Shown here: positions 26,839 to 32,209 of the stretch, in pieces
Numbering within the stretch: position 1 is the stretch's first letter
How the letters are laid out: the number at the start of each line of letters is the position of its first letter
NCBI RefSeq assembly: GCF_000142905.1
Contig: NW_013657615.1
Span: 124,001 to 188,000, forward strand
Direction: 5' to 3'
DNA from: Thecamonas trahens ATCC 50062
Lineage: Eukaryota > Protista > Apusomonadida
Length of the DNA: 64,000 bases
Program-made: the position numbers and the translations under genes
Notes under the pieces: generated by a model
Told to the model about the DNA's origin: nothing
The model's input: the letters and a program-made list of their open reading frames with translations, nothing else
Database searches by the model: none

Positions 26839-27876
26839 ATGACGACGATGACGCCGCTTGGACGCAGAGAGATGCCTGGCGAAGAAGTGTGGTTGGATGA
26901 GGCAGTTGCGTCGGCGGGTGAGGGCCTGGCGCAGTTTGAGCTCTCGCTTGAGGAGATGTACGCCGGTGCCGGCTCGGGCGGATGCGCCGAGGTGAGCACG
27001 AGCATGACGGGCGGCCTGCGGGTCCGCTCTCGTTCGCCTTCGCGGCTTGCGACGATTTGACGTGCTTTGATTGAGGGCCAGCCCCCGATTGAGTACAAGG
27101 CGTCGTCGAGCCTCGAGGCGATGCTGCTGACACCGCGGATCGGTGCGGCGTCGGGAGCCGAGTTGGGCGAAGGGCCGAGCGAGGAGGCCCGTATCCGACG
27201 GCTGGCCTTTCCGCGACGACTGCATGCGGTGGCGTGTTCGCCGATGTGGCCGGCTGTCTGCTTTGCCGCCGATGGCCAGGCACTGGCTGTGGCTACCGAC
27301 GGCAACTTTGGCCCGCTCACCTCGCGATCGGCGCTCGTCCGGCGGCTCTCCGACTACGGCTTCCGCAAGCAGCGCGGCGTGGACGAGTGGCGGCATCCTG
27401 CGTTCAACGCAGCGGAGCCTGACTTTGCAGCGATTGTGCGGCGCGGAGTGCGGCAAGGTTCGGCCGAGGCTGCGAGCGCAGGCGATGTGGCTGTGGCGGC
27501 CGACGCGACCGAGTGCGATGCGCTGCGACGCTCGCTGGTGGTGCTCAAGCGCAAGGGCGACGAGCTCACACGAGCGAGCGCGGCTAAGCGGGCGCGGCTG
27601 CTGCGGCTCGAGAGCGAGCAAGCTGTGCTGCGGACTACGATGAGCGCGATCCGAACGGCTGTGGCGCGGGTTGAGGCTCTGATGGCGCAGGTGGCGCCTG
27701 CTGCAAGGGTAGTGTTTGTTGGGGGGACGGCCGGGGCATCAGCGCGATCAGCCGAGGAAGTTGACGACAACAAGGTGGAGAATGACGTTGCAGAGGACAA
27801 AGTCTGCGTACGCGCGCTCGACCGAGATGGCATAGTTGTTGGACGGAGTGACCTGGATGCGGAGGCAGACCAGTAG
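26839..27876 (+). CDS. HSF-type DNA-binding domain + coiled-coil protein; probable intron 26992-27081
   Basis: FPRRLH...[13 protein letters not shown]...EWRHPAF resembles the HSF DBD, followed by a heptad region. The in-frame TGA at 27058 lies inside a phase-0 GTGAGC..CAG 90-nt intron. Start uncertain (26818, 26839 or 26872). Confidence 0.65.
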
Positions 27877-28741
27877 AATTGCCGAGCCGACGGCCGAGAA
27901 GAAGCCTGCCAAGAACGAGTTGAACGGGAAGGTGCCGACGAGCATGCAGTACACAAACTGGACCACAGCCTGTAGACACAGTATGCATCACCCCGCGCCA
28001 ACCGTGCCGACCACGCGCCGATGAGTTCGACCACGCGCCGCCGATGAGTACGACCACACATGGACCACAACCATGCCGACCACGCGCCGATGAGTACGAC
28101 CACAACCATGCCGACCACGCGCCGATGAGTACAACCACAACCATGCCGACCACGCGCCGATGAGTACAACCACAACCATGCCGACCACGCGCCGATGAGT
28201 ACGACCACAACCATGCCGACCACGCGCCGATGAGTACAACCACAACCATGCCGACCACAGCGATCACATGCATCACATCCATGCCGACCAGTACCCCCGC
28301 AGCCACAGCCAACGATTCCGCCCACTCCCGACCAACGATAAGTCCCCTTGTTGCCAATCCCTTCCATACCCCCACCCCCTTCCACCCCCACAATCCCGCA
28401 TCCCCCCCACCCCCACCTGCACCCCATGCCCTTGACCACCTCCACACCCACTCTGCGCATCCCCGTCCCCCACCCCCCACCCCCCCATACACCAGGTGGT
28501 CACAGCCAGGTTGCGCAGCGGGAAATTTTGCCTCTTCGCCGTCACCCTCTCCCTCGGCAGGAAGGGGATGGGGATGGGGATGGGGATGGGGATGGACCCC
28601 CCCCTCCCCCCCCTTCCCCCCTCATACACACACACGTACAGTCAACACAGCAGTGACAAGGAAGGCATCAATGACCTTCAGCCGCTGGGCAGTCTTCTCG
28701 TACTCCTCCACAAACTCGGTGGCAATGGCAAGCAGGCTCAT
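27748..28741 (-). CDS. DAD1: DAD1/OST2 oligosaccharyltransferase subunit; exons 28741-28640, 27969-27748
   Basis: [15 protein letters not shown]|[23 protein letters not shown]...CLRIQ...ERAYADF...[10 protein letters not shown]. Intron GTACGT..TACAG. Confidence 0.93.
28005..28258. repeat. 35-bp minisatellite inside the DAD1 intron
   Basis: CCATGCCGACCACGCGCCGATGAGTACRACCACAA at 28071, 28106, 28141, 28176 and 28211, with partial or degenerate flanking copies. Confidence 0.92.
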
Positions 28742-28928
28742 GGTGCGGCAAGCAGAGTTGGGTGGTGACCGACGTGGGGCGATGGGGGGGGGGGGGGGGG
28801 GGGTGATGCTGGTGATCTGGCTGGCGCCAATCTCTCCCTATTCTTGCATCATCTGACATCTGATGGCCATGGTGTACAGCGAGTGGCTGGAGCACATGGT
28901 GGGCGGTGCTGGTGTTTGTTTGTTGGCA

Positions 28929-29909
28929 CTACGCATTCGCGATGCAGGTCGGGCAGAACCACGAGCCAGAGGGGATGACCGCTACCTTGACGCAGGAGAG
29001 ATGATACCACTTGGTGACACAGTCTGGACCGTCGCATCCGATCCACTTGTCGGTCACCTTGCCGTTGCACACGCACCAACCCTCGGCGGCTCCAGTGCTC
29101 GCGGCGGCTCCGGTGCTCGCGGCGATTCCGGTGCTCGCGCTGCCGGCAGTGCTGGCGGCGGCGGCGGACACTGTGCTCGCAGTCGAGCTGGTGACCATCG
29201 GCACCACGTCTGCCGCCGGCTTGCTCGGCGGTGGCATGACGCCGACCGGCGACGGCTTCTTGGACAGAAGCTCGATTTTCATCGGTTGCGGGCCGGCGCC
29301 CGAGCGCGCGGCGGCGAGCTCTGTCAGGCGCTCGTTGCGGCGACGGGCGTACTCCTCCTTGGAGAGGATGTCAACCGACGATCCGGGCTTTCCTTCGGCT
29401 TTTGCAGCCTCGATGGCAGCCACAGCGCGGCCACCATCGTCGGCAACGAGGACACCGGCTTTCCACGCGCCGGAAGCGACGCCAATGCCATGGTTGAACT
29501 TGCGGACGGTCTCGATCTCCTCCAGCGAGGCCGGGTGCCAGCCGCGGTACTCTGACAAGTTCTGGCGACCAAGTAGGCGCTGCGTCTTGACTCTCAGCTG
29601 CTGATTGGTCCACCCGGGCAGCAAGTCCTTGATCATGGACGTGTATCCGCCCACGCCATACTGCATCAGCCCAGCGATGAGCAGCGCACGCTCATTGGCG
29701 CCCCACTTATGACTCTTCTGCGTATCCATGTGCTCATCCCAATCCTTCTTGGACGGACGAAAGTAGTTCTGCCGCAGCCGACCATCGGCCTCGATCACCT
29801 CCTTTGGCGAGAACAGCAGCCGCAGTCGCCGCGCATACTCCTGCTTGGCCGCCTCGCTCTCCAGCGGGCTGTCCCCAATGCGCTCCGCCCCCTCACCGCC
29901 ACCTCCCAT
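28929..29909 (-). CDS. p2-like subunit of the MTA1/AMT1 6mA methyltransferase complex fused to a C-terminal PHD finger
   Basis: QEYARRLRLLFS...DGRLRQNYF...KWGANERALLIAGLMQYGVG...LRVKTQRLLGRQNLSEYRG...RKFNHGIG follows the p2 pattern (YAxxxRxxxS...DG...YF...W...L..G...FGVG...LG...EY.G). PHD is WCVC..WIGCDGPDC..KWYHLSC..WFCPTC. The start could be 29965 if the C4 run at 29929 is C5. Confidence 0.75.
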   Translation of the reverse strand: MGGGGEGAERIGDSPLESEAAKQEYARRLRLLFSPKEVIEADGRLRQNYFRPSKKDWDEHMDTQKSHKWGANERALLIAGLMQYGVGGYTSMIKDLLPGWTNQQLRVKTQRLLGRQNLSEYRGWHPASLEEIETVRKFNHGIGVASGAWKAGVLVADDGGRAVAAIEAAKAEGKPGSSVDILSKEEYARRRNERLTELAAARSGAGPQPMKIELLSKKPSPVGVMPPPSKPAADVVPMVTSSTASTVSAAAASTAGSASTGIAASTGAAASTGAAEGWCVCNGKVTDKWIGCDGPDCVTKWYHLSCVKVAVIPSGSWFCPTCIANA

Positions 29910-30171
29910 ACCCTCTCCGCTCGCACCACCCCTCCCGTTGCCACCGTCTTCTCGCTTTCAGCCATGTCGCCGTCCCTCGTCTTGTCGCGCCCTTCCTCCG
30001 TCGCCTGCTCTGGAGTCGAGTCGTGTGGTCTGCCAAGCCGTGGCCCGACTCCTCCGAATCGCCGCCCGACATGACCCGACTCCCGCTCTGGTCTCCCCCA
30101 CCCATCGGCGCCTTGATGGGGCAAGGCTCTCTTCTCGCAGCTGTTCTGGTTTATCTCCTTGTTCCGCTTTG

Positions 30172-31374
30172 TCACCGGTGCCAGCGCCGGCGGCGGACGT
30201 TGGAAGAGCGGACGGCGCCCTCGGCACCGATGCGGCGGCGGGCGCGAGCAGCTTCGCGCTCCTCGGCGCGTTTGCGGGCCTCGTCGGCAGCCTTGGCCTC
30301 GGCACGGACAACTGCGAGTTGGGCACGGATGGCCTGGATGTCGTCGACGCGGTCTTGGATGATGCGCGAGGCCGACTCGGTGGAGAGGCCGAGCTTGGGA
30401 ATGCCAAACTTGGCCTCGGCCGGGTTGTCGGAGAGCTCGATGTCGACAACAACGCCGCACTGCGCTGCGTCCTCAAGCCACTCGCCCTCAAGCATTTTGT
30501 TCTTGGAGACAAAGTACCATCGGCCGGGCCCATCCTTGACGTCATGCGACCACGAGCCTTCAAAGACGTCGCCGTTAGCAAAGAAGGCCTTGCCAAAGCC
30601 GGACCGCTCGTCGTCGCGCCACTCGCCCTCGTACCGCAGTCCATCGGCGGCGTAGACCATGGTGCCCCAGCCAGAGCGGCGGCCGTGGGCCCACTCGCCC
30701 TCGTACACGTTGCCGCTGGGCCAGTAGCGGGTCCCGAGACCGTGGCGAGCGTCGGCCAGCCATCCGCCCGAGTACTCGAGAAACAGCTCCTCGATGCCGG
30801 CGGTCTCGCCCCTGGCGGCAGCCTCTTCGGCAGCCTTGGCCTCGACGACCTGGCCATCACTGTCGACGATGACCATTCTCCAAAAGGTGCCGCGACCCTG
30901 GCGCATGTCGTCCTCAAACTCGCCCTCGTAGCGATCGCCGTTGGCCCAGATCTCGACGCCATGGCCATGCCTCAGATCCTTCCGCCACTCTCCGGTATAC
31001 TCGGATCCATCGACCGCATACACCGTGTTCCGCTCACCATGTCGCCAAGCCAAGGGGTACGTCGTCACGTCTTCTCCAAACGGTCCCGCCCGAGTATGCT
31101 CATCGCCACCATTAACCGTCCTCGGCCGTCCTGTCGCTCTCCGCCCTCCCACCCGTCCGCCTGTCCCTGTGCTTGTCCGCCCGCTGCTGTTGCCGGCCCG
31201 TTTGCGCCTCGTGCCCGACACAGCTGCCTTGACCGTCTTCCGCATCTGCCGTCCCCCATGGTGCTGCCGAGCGCCATGCCGACCACCACCACCACCACCC
31301 TCTCGACCGCCCTGGTACGACTGCCGTGTGCTCACCGAGCTGAACGACGACTCGGAACACGTCTCCGCACTCAT
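30172..31374 (-). CDS. MORN3: MORN-repeat protein, MORN3-like
   Basis: VYAVDGSEYTGEW..., repeated YEGEW..G.G units, and terminal EGEWLEDAAQCG...FGIPKL as in MORN3. Confidence 0.82.
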   Translation of the reverse strand: MSAETCSESSFSSVSTRQSYQGGREGGGGGGRHGARQHHGGRQMRKTVKAAVSGTRRKRAGNSSGRTSTGTGGRVGGRRATGRPRTVNGGDEHTRAGPFGEDVTTYPLAWRHGERNTVYAVDGSEYTGEWRKDLRHGHGVEIWANGDRYEGEFEDDMRQGRGTFWRMVIVDSDGQVVEAKAAEEAAARGETAGIEELFLEYSGGWLADARHGLGTRYWPSGNVYEGEWAHGRRSGWGTMVYAADGLRYEGEWRDDERSGFGKAFFANGDVFEGSWSHDVKDGPGRWYFVSKNKMLEGEWLEDAAQCGVVVDIELSDNPAEAKFGIPKLGLSTESASRIIQDRVDDIQAIRAQLAVVRAEAKAADEARKRAEEREAARARRRIGAEGAVRSSNVRRRRWHR

Positions 31375-31532
31375 CGTCGACCGTTTGCTTGCTTGGTCGA
31401 GTCTGGAGAAGAGTGGTCCTTGACGCCGTTGTCCACTGCCGCCTCCCTCTCCCCCTTCTCCGCGTCGCTCTCGGTGCTGTCGTCCTGCCGTTTGCCGTTG
31501 CTGGTTCGTTCGAGCGTTCGTTGGCTGCCACC

Positions 31533-32209
31533 CCAACAATCGTTACCCACTCCAACAATCATTGTCTTGTCCAACTAATCGTTACTCACTCCAACAATCA
31601 TTCTCTTGTCCAACTAATCGTCACTCCAACAATCATTCTCTTGTCCAACTAATCGTTACCCACTCCAACAATCATTCTCTTGTCCAACTAATCGTTACCC
31701 ACTCCAACAATCATTCTCTTGTCCAACTAATCGTTACCCACTCCAACAATCATTCTCTTGTCCAACTAATCGTTACCCACTCCAACAATCATTCTCTTGT
31801 CCAACTAATCGTTACTCACTCCAACAATCATTCTCTTGTCCAACTAATCGTTACCCACTCCAACAATCATTCTCTTGTCCAACTAATCGTTACTCACTCC
31901 AACAATCATTCTCTTGTCCAACTAATCGTTACCCACTCCAACAATCATTCTCTTGTCCAACTAATCGTTACCCACTCCAACAATCATTCTCTTGTCCAAC
32001 TAATCGTTACTCACTCCAACAATCATTCTCTTGTCCAACTAATCGTTACCCACTCCAACAATCATTCTCTTGTCCAACTAATCGTTACCCACTCCAACAA
32101 TCATTCTCTTGTCCAACTAATCGTTACCCACTCCAACAATCATTCTCTTGTCCAACTAATCGTTACTCACTCCAACAATCATTCTCTTGTCCAACTAATC
32201 GTTACCCAC
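31533..32209. repeat. 39-bp AT-richer minisatellite, about 17 copies
   Basis: CCAACTAATCGTTACYCACTCCAACAATCATTCTCTTGT head to tail with no spacers; one copy near 31620 has a short deletion. Confidence 0.97.

Follow-up and report, generated by a model that had tools for sequence, protein, structure and literature searches.

In many unicellular eukaryotes, N6-methyladenine (6mA) lies just downstream of transcription start sites (TSS), beside nucleosomes that carry histone H3 trimethylated at lysine 4 (H3K4me3). The ciliate DNA N6-adenine methyltransferase AMT1 (MTA1) works in a complex with small accessory subunits, one of which, p2, is required by Tetrahymena MTA1 for binding of S-adenosylmethionine (SAM) (PMC9174199). 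In crystal structures, Arg22, Ser26, Asn27 and Tyr41 of Tetrahymena p2 contact the methyltransferase (MTase) domain of MTA1, while Tyr41 and Thr44, the latter through its main chain, hold MTA1 Arg358 and Leu372, upon which the SAM pocket opens (PMC9174199). Ciliate p2 proteins are 128–142 amino acids (aa) long and have no further domain. The published evidence on targeting of the AMT1 complex is mixed: 6mA in Acanthamoeba does not require H3K4me3, and a PHD finger found on p1 orthologues of ichthyosporeans, which its authors proposed as a possible link to H3K4me3 (Romero Charria et al., Nat Genet 2025, PMC12695648, Supplementary Fig. 5), hints at direct reading of the mark.

Here, we analyze a 64,000-nucleotide stretch (the window) from the genome of Thecamonas trahens ATCC 50062, a marine flagellate of the Apusomonadida with an assembly of 28.7 Mb in 131 contigs, and describe a gene in which a p2 domain continues through a flexible linker into a PHD finger of the ING type. 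We identify the gene as the p2/AMTP2 orthologue of T. trahens, p2 being a small accessory protein of the DNA N6-adenine methyltransferase complex, and the architecture of the gene suggests a direct route by which an adenine methyltransferase may be held at H3K4me3 nucleosomes.

Architecture of the p2-PHD protein

The window has a mean G+C content of about 64%, and at 28929–29909 (−) it holds a single ATG-to-stop frame of 326 aa without interruption, as an initial annotation made from the sequence letters had read it. The motifs quoted there (QEYARRLRLLFS, DGRLRQNYF, YGVG and LRVKTQRLLGRQNLSEYRG) are all present in the translation, and the boundaries given for the two domains (29850–29445 and 29078–28944) are correct to within a few codons. 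The parts of the gene are as follows, with confidence given as the pLDDT of an AlphaFold2 (AF2) model where one applies.

28929..29909 (−): the whole open reading frame (ORF), intron-less, 326 aa; p2/AMTP2-family domain, flexible linker and ING-type PHD finger (from the ORF, domain searches and contigs of RNA runs)
29760..29855 (−): p2 N-terminal domain, residues 19–50; a helix with R30 and S34, then Y49-F50; predicted AMT1-docking and SAM-pocket switch element
29535..29714 (−): homeobox/Myb-like three-helix core, residues 66–125, KWGANERALLIAGLMQYGVGGY...LRVKTQRLLGRQNLSEYRGW; aligns to the homeodomain (HD) of p2 and p1; pLDDT >95
29430..29534 (−): p2 C-terminal domain, residues 126–160, with the family motif G-x-W-K-x-G-x-L-V-x-D-D-x-G; from the family consensus; pLDDT >94
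29304..29429 (−): two extra helices, residues 161–202 (161–172 and 184–202); pLDDT 84–96; aligned to the nearest relative (P0001)
29082..29303 (−): disordered tether rich in Ala, Ser, Pro and Thr, about 74 residues (203–276); pLDDT <55, and composition
28938..29081 (−): ING-type C4HC3 PHD finger, residues 277–324, its last zinc ligand four residues before the stop; ING5 match and PF00628

The AF2 model, built on a 65-sequence alignment, reached a pLDDT above 90 over residues 20–200. The helices at residues 161–202 are common to T. trahens p2 and its nearest relative and do not occur in ciliate p2, so that the T. trahens protein adds two helices, the tether of about 74 residues and the PHD finger to the ciliate layout. 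The end of the linker that adjoins the finger, made of Ala, Ser, Thr and Gly, is encoded by an 18-bp tandem repeat of 4.4 copies (29084–29162).

The N-terminal domain belongs to the p2 family

Compared as a whole with the Protein Data Bank (PDB) by phmmer, the protein matched Paramecium p2 (E = 1.3e-4) and Tetrahymena AMTP2 (4.3e-4) over residues 20–144, and p1 (1.4e-3) within the Myb core alone (residues 66–125). No Pfam family covered the N-terminal domain in a Pfam scan. A HMMER search with residues 1–155 returned 212 proteins at E ≤1e-3, 69 at ≤1e-10, most of them 130–210 aa long, and a family profile was built from 44 of these homologues. This profile matched Paramecium Ptep2 at 5.1e-28 (profile positions 24–151 against chain positions 5–127 of 128) and AMTP2 at 4e-27 over nearly the full chain. 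Matches to p1 were weaker (1.7e-11), as were those to unrelated Myb proteins, of which SNAPC4 was the best (9e-9; SNAPC4/TRF Myb domains 9e-9 or weaker). Comparison of folds with Foldseek against the PDB placed p2 chains in the top seven ranks (E 2.8e-5 to 1.6e-3, TM 0.62–0.66 by target) and p1 chains in ranks 8–9, with generic Myb/SANT folds appearing only at E >2.

Judged by its sequence, the segment from residue 19 to residue 160 belongs to the p2/AMTP2 family. The initial annotation had called the domain p2-like and had named a better match to generic Myb/SANT as the result that would speak against this; profile and fold instead agree in ranking p2 above p1 and far above generic Myb/SANT, and we rejected a generic Myb/SANT-PHD protein because both favour p2.

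The T. trahens domain shares with Tetrahymena AMTP2 and Paramecium Ptep2 (PDB 7F4L, 7F4T, 7YI8, 8XYL, 9O6K) the N-terminal helix-loop, the homeobox/Myb-like core and the C-terminal segment, at an identity of only about 25%. Two positions anchor the alignment to Tetrahymena p2: R30, invariant in the p2 family, falls on R22, and F50, nearly so, falls on F42, which therefore sets S34 on S26 and Y49 on Y41. Three MTA1-contacting residues, Arg22, Ser26 and Tyr41, are in this way retained as R30, S34 and Y49. Asn27 and Thr44 are replaced by Pro35 and Pro52, and proline is the majority residue at both positions in the non-ciliate family.

The genome encodes the partners of p2

The partners that the initial annotation had proposed to look for (AMT1, MTA9 and p1) have counterparts in the genome: AMT1, an MTA9-like AMT6/7 protein and p1 are all present. 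The MT-A70 model matched three loci. One of them (L001) is an exon ORF with a DPPW motif whose match to Tetrahymena MTA1 (4e-71) is far ahead of that to METTL3 (2e-38), which identifies it as AMT1; the gene has at least one intron. Another (L003) encodes a 545-aa protein without DPPW that matches MTA9/AMT7 at 3e-17. The remaining locus (L002:37-2817 (+), contig C31 ~271110-273890) encodes an MT-A70 domain that keeps DPPW intact and, after it, zinc fingers of the ZZ type (PF00569, 5e-12) that resemble the histone-H3-binding ZZ of HERC2, and this AMT2/5-like protein is possibly a further writer equipped with an H3-tail reader. The published tree and table give these loci the identifiers AMSG_05730, AMSG_10222 and AMSG_07188, with AMSG_07188 placed with AMT2/5, and Thecamonas is credited there with one AMT1, one AMT6/7, one AMT2/5 and no METTL3, METTL14 or METTL4 (PMC12695648).

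The p1 protein (L005, 223 aa, 3e-33 to Tetrahymena p1) is letter for letter AMSG_04752, and no PHD was found on it. Across the whole genome the p2 family profile matched the window locus at 1e-54, p1 at 3e-11 and one generic Myb stretch at 7e-4, and it found no second p2 gene. A weak third match from a single-sequence search (L006, E 0.14) was dismissed as noise. As with ciliate p2, the T. trahens protein therefore occurs together with AMT1, AMT6/7 and p1, and it shares the MTA1-contacting Arg, Ser and Tyr.

Predicted docking of p2 on AMT1

We co-folded the ORF of the last AMT1 exon with p2 residues 15–165, alongside three controls. Docking was predicted in this two-protein check, with a score of 0.62 against 0.02 for the best control; in calibration, the score mark was reached by 51 of 78 solved complexes and by 2 of 108 mismatched pairs. 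The runs shared at least 45% of contacts, with a partner pLDDT of at least 72. On the p2 side the predicted interface comprises residues 15–17, 22, 25–26, 28–30, 32–35, 38, 45 and 50, and on the AMT1 side exon residues 1–4, 14–19, 131, 165–167, 175, 180–183 and 189. Exon residue 175 corresponds to Tetrahymena Arg358 and 189 to Leu372 (alignment ranges 15–189 versus 197–372). The p2 part is thus predicted to dock on AMT1 by its N-terminal helix, the element that does so in the ciliate complex. Because that complex has already been solved, the co-fold shows likeness, not proof; it covered the last exon of AMT1, to which the helical N-terminal region that binds the p2 core in ciliates does not belong.

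These results bear on whether the protein is still a subunit at all. It could instead have left the methyltransferase complex and act as a free Myb-PHD chromatin factor whose resemblance to p2 reflects ancestry only, a view that fits the weak single-sequence match to ciliate p2 (1e-4) and the absence of any Pfam family over the domain. We find this quite improbable: the gene is the sole member of the p2 family in a genome that keeps AMT1, AMT6/7 and p1, the contact residues are conserved, the co-fold score stands at 0.62 against 0.02 for the best control, and p2 is what Tetrahymena MTA1 requires to bind SAM (PMC9174199).

An ING-type PHD finger with an aromatic cage

The C-terminal element CVCNGKVTDKWIGCDGPDCVTKWYHLSCVKVAVIPSGSWFCPTC (residues 279–322, nucleotides 28944–29075) is a C4HC3 finger with zinc ligands C279, C281, C292, C297, H303, C306, C319 and C322 in ING spacing. 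Its best phmmer match in the PDB is the ING5 PHD (6.9e-12), gap-free along 48 residues at about 50% identity. The 19 best matches are all ING-family PHDs (ING5, Pho23, ING4, ING3, ING2, ING1, Yng2, Png2 and Yng1; 6.9e-12 to 8e-7), with matches beyond the ING family at 1e-5 and weaker. PF00628 gave 21.5 bits on the whole protein, under the 24-bit cut-off, and 25.4 bits in the genome scan. The zinc ligands and the ING5 match bear out the earlier reading of a C4HC3 finger of ING type.

The finger resembles the PHDs of ING1–5, Yng1/2 and Pho23 in its C4HC3 spacing, in its extreme C-terminal position and in the cage Trp and Asp. No match to the ING N-terminal domain (PF12998) was found in the 326-aa protein, which therefore shares only the type of PHD with ING proteins and is not one of them. 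The genome has one canonical ING gene, at another site (L009, contig C31:378128-381418), and the PHD of that gene (YCYCRRVSYGEMVGCEN...) is split by an intron. Because the p2 PHD is intron-less and only about 40% identical to it over the first 17 residues, the p2 PHD is not a recent copy of the canonical one. The 53-aa PHD used as a single query against its own genome matched only itself, which reflects low sensitivity, since the Pfam PHD model finds 28 sites in the same genome.

An ING-type PHD usually reads H3K4me3. We take the cage pattern of ING2 and ING4 to be Tyr, Ser at +7, Met at +11, Asp at +15, Glu at +22 and Trp at +23; transferred through the ING5 alignment, it gives a cage of W278, V285, W289 and W301, with D293 kept and the ING Glu replaced by K300. 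The initial annotation was right in proposing a three-tryptophan cage with a conserved Asp (W278, W289, W301 and D293), and it had left out the changes of Ser to V285 and Glu to K300. The ING cage residues Tyr, Ser and Met are thus Trp, Val and Trp here, and Lys stands in place of the Glu that precedes the cage Trp; the cage stays aromatic and the R2 pocket is altered. ING PHDs are followed by a polybasic tail, which this protein lacks, ending four residues past its last Cys.

Since V285 and K300 differ from ING, the specificity of the finger could differ as well, and this provides the main alternative to H3K4me3 reading. The protein would be a genuine p2 of the AMT1 complex, and its PHD would read another target, such as unmodified or lower-methylated H3K4, another methyl-lysine or a non-histone partner, and would tune the complex in some other way, for example by exclusion or allosteric control. 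The three departures from ING at S (V285), M (W289) and E (K300) and the missing polybasic tail point in this direction. We nevertheless regard it as unlikely, given that the three aromatic cage residues and the Asp are kept, that every one of the best sequence matches is an ING PHD that reads H3K4me3, and that the cage is aromatic throughout in other H3K4me3-reading PHDs such as that of BPTF, where an aromatic residue occupies the place of the ING Met. In addition, an independent fusion in Diphylleia, described below, uses a zf-CW domain like that of MORC3, whose CW domain is a reader of H3K4me3.

The H3 tail encoded in the T. trahens genome is canonical (ARTKQTARKS). A search with N-SET (PF11764) found no match in this genome and none in control genomes either, and is uninformative about SET1. 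Feature matches in the ESM Atlas to Oomycota PHD/SANT clusters (score 0.82) fell under the meaningful level and were set aside.

Transcript coverage of the gene

Contigs assembled from RNA runs cover both ends of the gene. In a seawater metatranscriptome (X1), exact contigs span 28797–29003, which holds the 3' untranslated region (UTR) and the PHD, and 29483–29913, which holds the p2 domain and reaches the start codon. One contig of 802 nt, from run X9, extends over 28858–29659 with no gaps or mismatches and connects the PHD through the linker to half of the p2 domain. Positions 29914–30004, which separate this gene from the neighboring MORN gene, had no coverage in the RNA runs compared. With coverage of both ends and one bridging contig, the RNA data fit one mRNA of about 1.1 kb without proving the single transcript that the initial annotation had asked to confirm. 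The exact 326-aa sequence is not in a collection of 15 billion proteins, though p1 is there under an NCBI accession, and the gene may have another model in the public annotation; in the ESM Atlas, the 326-aa sequence is present letter for letter.

A further explanation is that the fusion is an artefact of the gene model, with the PHD missing from mature p2 on account of a cryptic intron, an alternative 3' end as in an isoform from Diphylleia, or misassembly in the repeat-encoded linker. In favour of this, the 18-bp tandem repeat encodes linker sequence immediately before the PHD, the protein of the nearest relative comes to its end within the matching low-complexity stretch, Diphylleia has one isoform that carries its reader and another that lacks it, and the 15-billion-protein collection holds p1 and lacks this sequence. 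Against these stand a continuous frame with no stop, the gap-free 802-nt contig and the exact metatranscriptome contigs, the uncovered intergenic stretch at 29914–30004, the position of the PHD at the very C-terminus as in ING proteins, and the identical sequence in the ESM Atlas, so that we consider an artefact very unlikely.

Gene neighborhood and nearest relative

The closest relative found (P0001/P0152, 59% identity) lies on a Tara Oceans contig (L007) that keeps the convergent order of p2 and DAD1, with a DAD1 exon on the opposite strand. The distance from the p2 stop to the DAD1 exon is 12 bp in the Tara Oceans contig versus about 960 bp in the window. A metagenome search for related loci found no relatives.

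In the window, the gene is flanked by a MORN-repeat protein at 30172–31539 (−) (PF02493, 7.5e-29) and by the last DAD1 exon at 27748–27966 (−) (PF02109, 4.4e-29), neither of which has a functional link to p2-PHD that we could see. The spacer between the p2-PHD gene and DAD1 contains a 35-bp repeat of 5.6 copies with 98% matches (28064–28258).

Reader domains on other p2 and p1 proteins

Among the 150 best representatives of the p2 family we found no PHD. The survey for p2-PHD fusions thus yielded no second example, and it brought up two relatives that carry other reader domains. In Diphylleia rotans, which is listed as encoding AMT1, one protein (P0153) joins a p2 domain (Ptep2, 2.8e-11) to a C-terminal zf-CW (Pfam, 1.2e-18), for which CW chains of MORC3 gave the best solved matches (1.9e-10); a sister isoform (P0013) is without the zf-CW. 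In Thecamoeba quadrilineata, a protein (P0018) begins with a BET-type bromodomain (Pfam, 6.8e-14; BRD4, 2e-25) and continues into a p2 domain that matches the N-terminus of the window protein at E 2.4e-20. Both proteins come from Trinity transcriptomes (EukProt), and chimeric assembly is therefore possible.

A further member of the family, from JGI and Logan metagenome proteins (P0154/P0030; AMTP2, 6.6e-10), has a C-terminal segment, VGQRVAVWFSD...YWILWDSD, that had no match in Pfam, the PDB or the Atlas. AF2 places three low-confidence beta strands there, and it could be a Tudor/SH3-like reader.

The published ichthyosporean fusion likewise sets a PHD on an accessory subunit of the AMT1 complex. 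It differs in that its finger sits on p1 (the DNA-binding subunit; assignment as published) in Holozoa, and that of Thecamonas on p2 in Apusomonadida. Taken together, the reader fusions suggest repeated, independent coupling of the AMT1 complex to active-chromatin marks.

A model for direct reading of H3K4me3 by the methyltransferase complex

In the model that we favour, the N-terminal helix and Tyr-Phe loop of p2 would clamp the C-terminal loops of the AMT1 catalytic domain and open the SAM pocket, as in ciliates. Past the p2 domain, the flexible tether of about 74 residues leads into the ING-type PHD with its three-tryptophan cage, and the finger would bind the methylated H3K4 tail on promoter-proximal nucleosomes. 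The methyltransferase would thereby be kept beside these nucleosomes, and ApT sites of the adjacent linker DNA would be methylated. The DNA of T. trahens would, on this model, carry 6mA. That the p2-tethered PHD recruits the 6mA methyltransferase to H3K4me3 nucleosomes is, in our judgment, slightly more probable than not.

Several observations weigh against this model. The closest relative ends in a low-complexity tail, with a PHD in no frame, so the fusion is either young or was lost there, and the PHD is not needed for core p2 function; from the sequences at hand, the PHD on p2 is lineage-specific, gained in T. trahens or lost in the relative. Within the finger, the changes of Ser to V285 and of the R2-contacting Glu to K300, a reversal of charge, depart from ING. 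AF2 gave a pLDDT below 50 across the PHD, which it did not model because the alignment has no sequences in that region. In the co-fold, the predictor may have reproduced from its training the ciliate complex, whose structure is solved. For RNA, the evidence is limited to assembled contigs, and the bridging one comes from a run (X9) of unrecorded kind. Finally, we found no work on 6mA in Thecamonas in the literature searched.

As far as sequence, fold and in-silico docking reach, they support the interpretation put forward in the initial annotation. Its statement that no fusion of this kind had been described holds for p2, since we found no description of a reader domain on p2 in the literature searched; it does not hold for the complex as a whole, as a PHD on p1 has been published for ichthyosporeans (PMC12695648), and the concept of a reader fusion is therefore not unprecedented. 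The AMT1 complex, p2 and ING PHDs were already known; the PHD on p2 is new, as are the zf-CW on p2 of Diphylleia and the bromodomain of BET type on p2 of Thecamoeba.

Cytosine methyltransferases guided by histone readers are familiar from DNMT3, with its ADD and PWWP domains, and from plant CMT3, with its chromodomain. The arrangement proposed here follows the same logic, in which a reader of a histone mark coupled to a DNA methyltransferase sets the site of DNA methylation. Unlike DNMT3 and CMT3, it would involve an MT-A70 enzyme (adenine N6), a mark of active chromatin, and a reader carried on a non-catalytic accessory subunit.

A broader proposal, tentative and to our mind rather doubtful, starts from at least four separate gains of a reader: the PHD on Thecamonas p2, the zf-CW on p2 of Diphylleia (CRuMs), the BET bromodomain on p2 of Thecamoeba (Amoebozoa) and the PHD on ichthyosporean p1. 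Reading of active-promoter marks (H3K4me3 and acetyl-lysine) might then be the general and ancestral way in which 6mA is aimed at linker DNA downstream of the TSS, in most species through a separate adaptor, with p2, which does not touch DNA, serving as the hub for readers.

With a p2 subunit and an H3K4me3-type reader in one protein, and with a genome that is small and sequenced, T. trahens makes a clean test case for the placement of 6mA. The zf-CW and the bromodomain on p2 in other supergroups turn a single oddity into a pattern, one that points to p2 as the targeting adaptor of the AMT1 complex.

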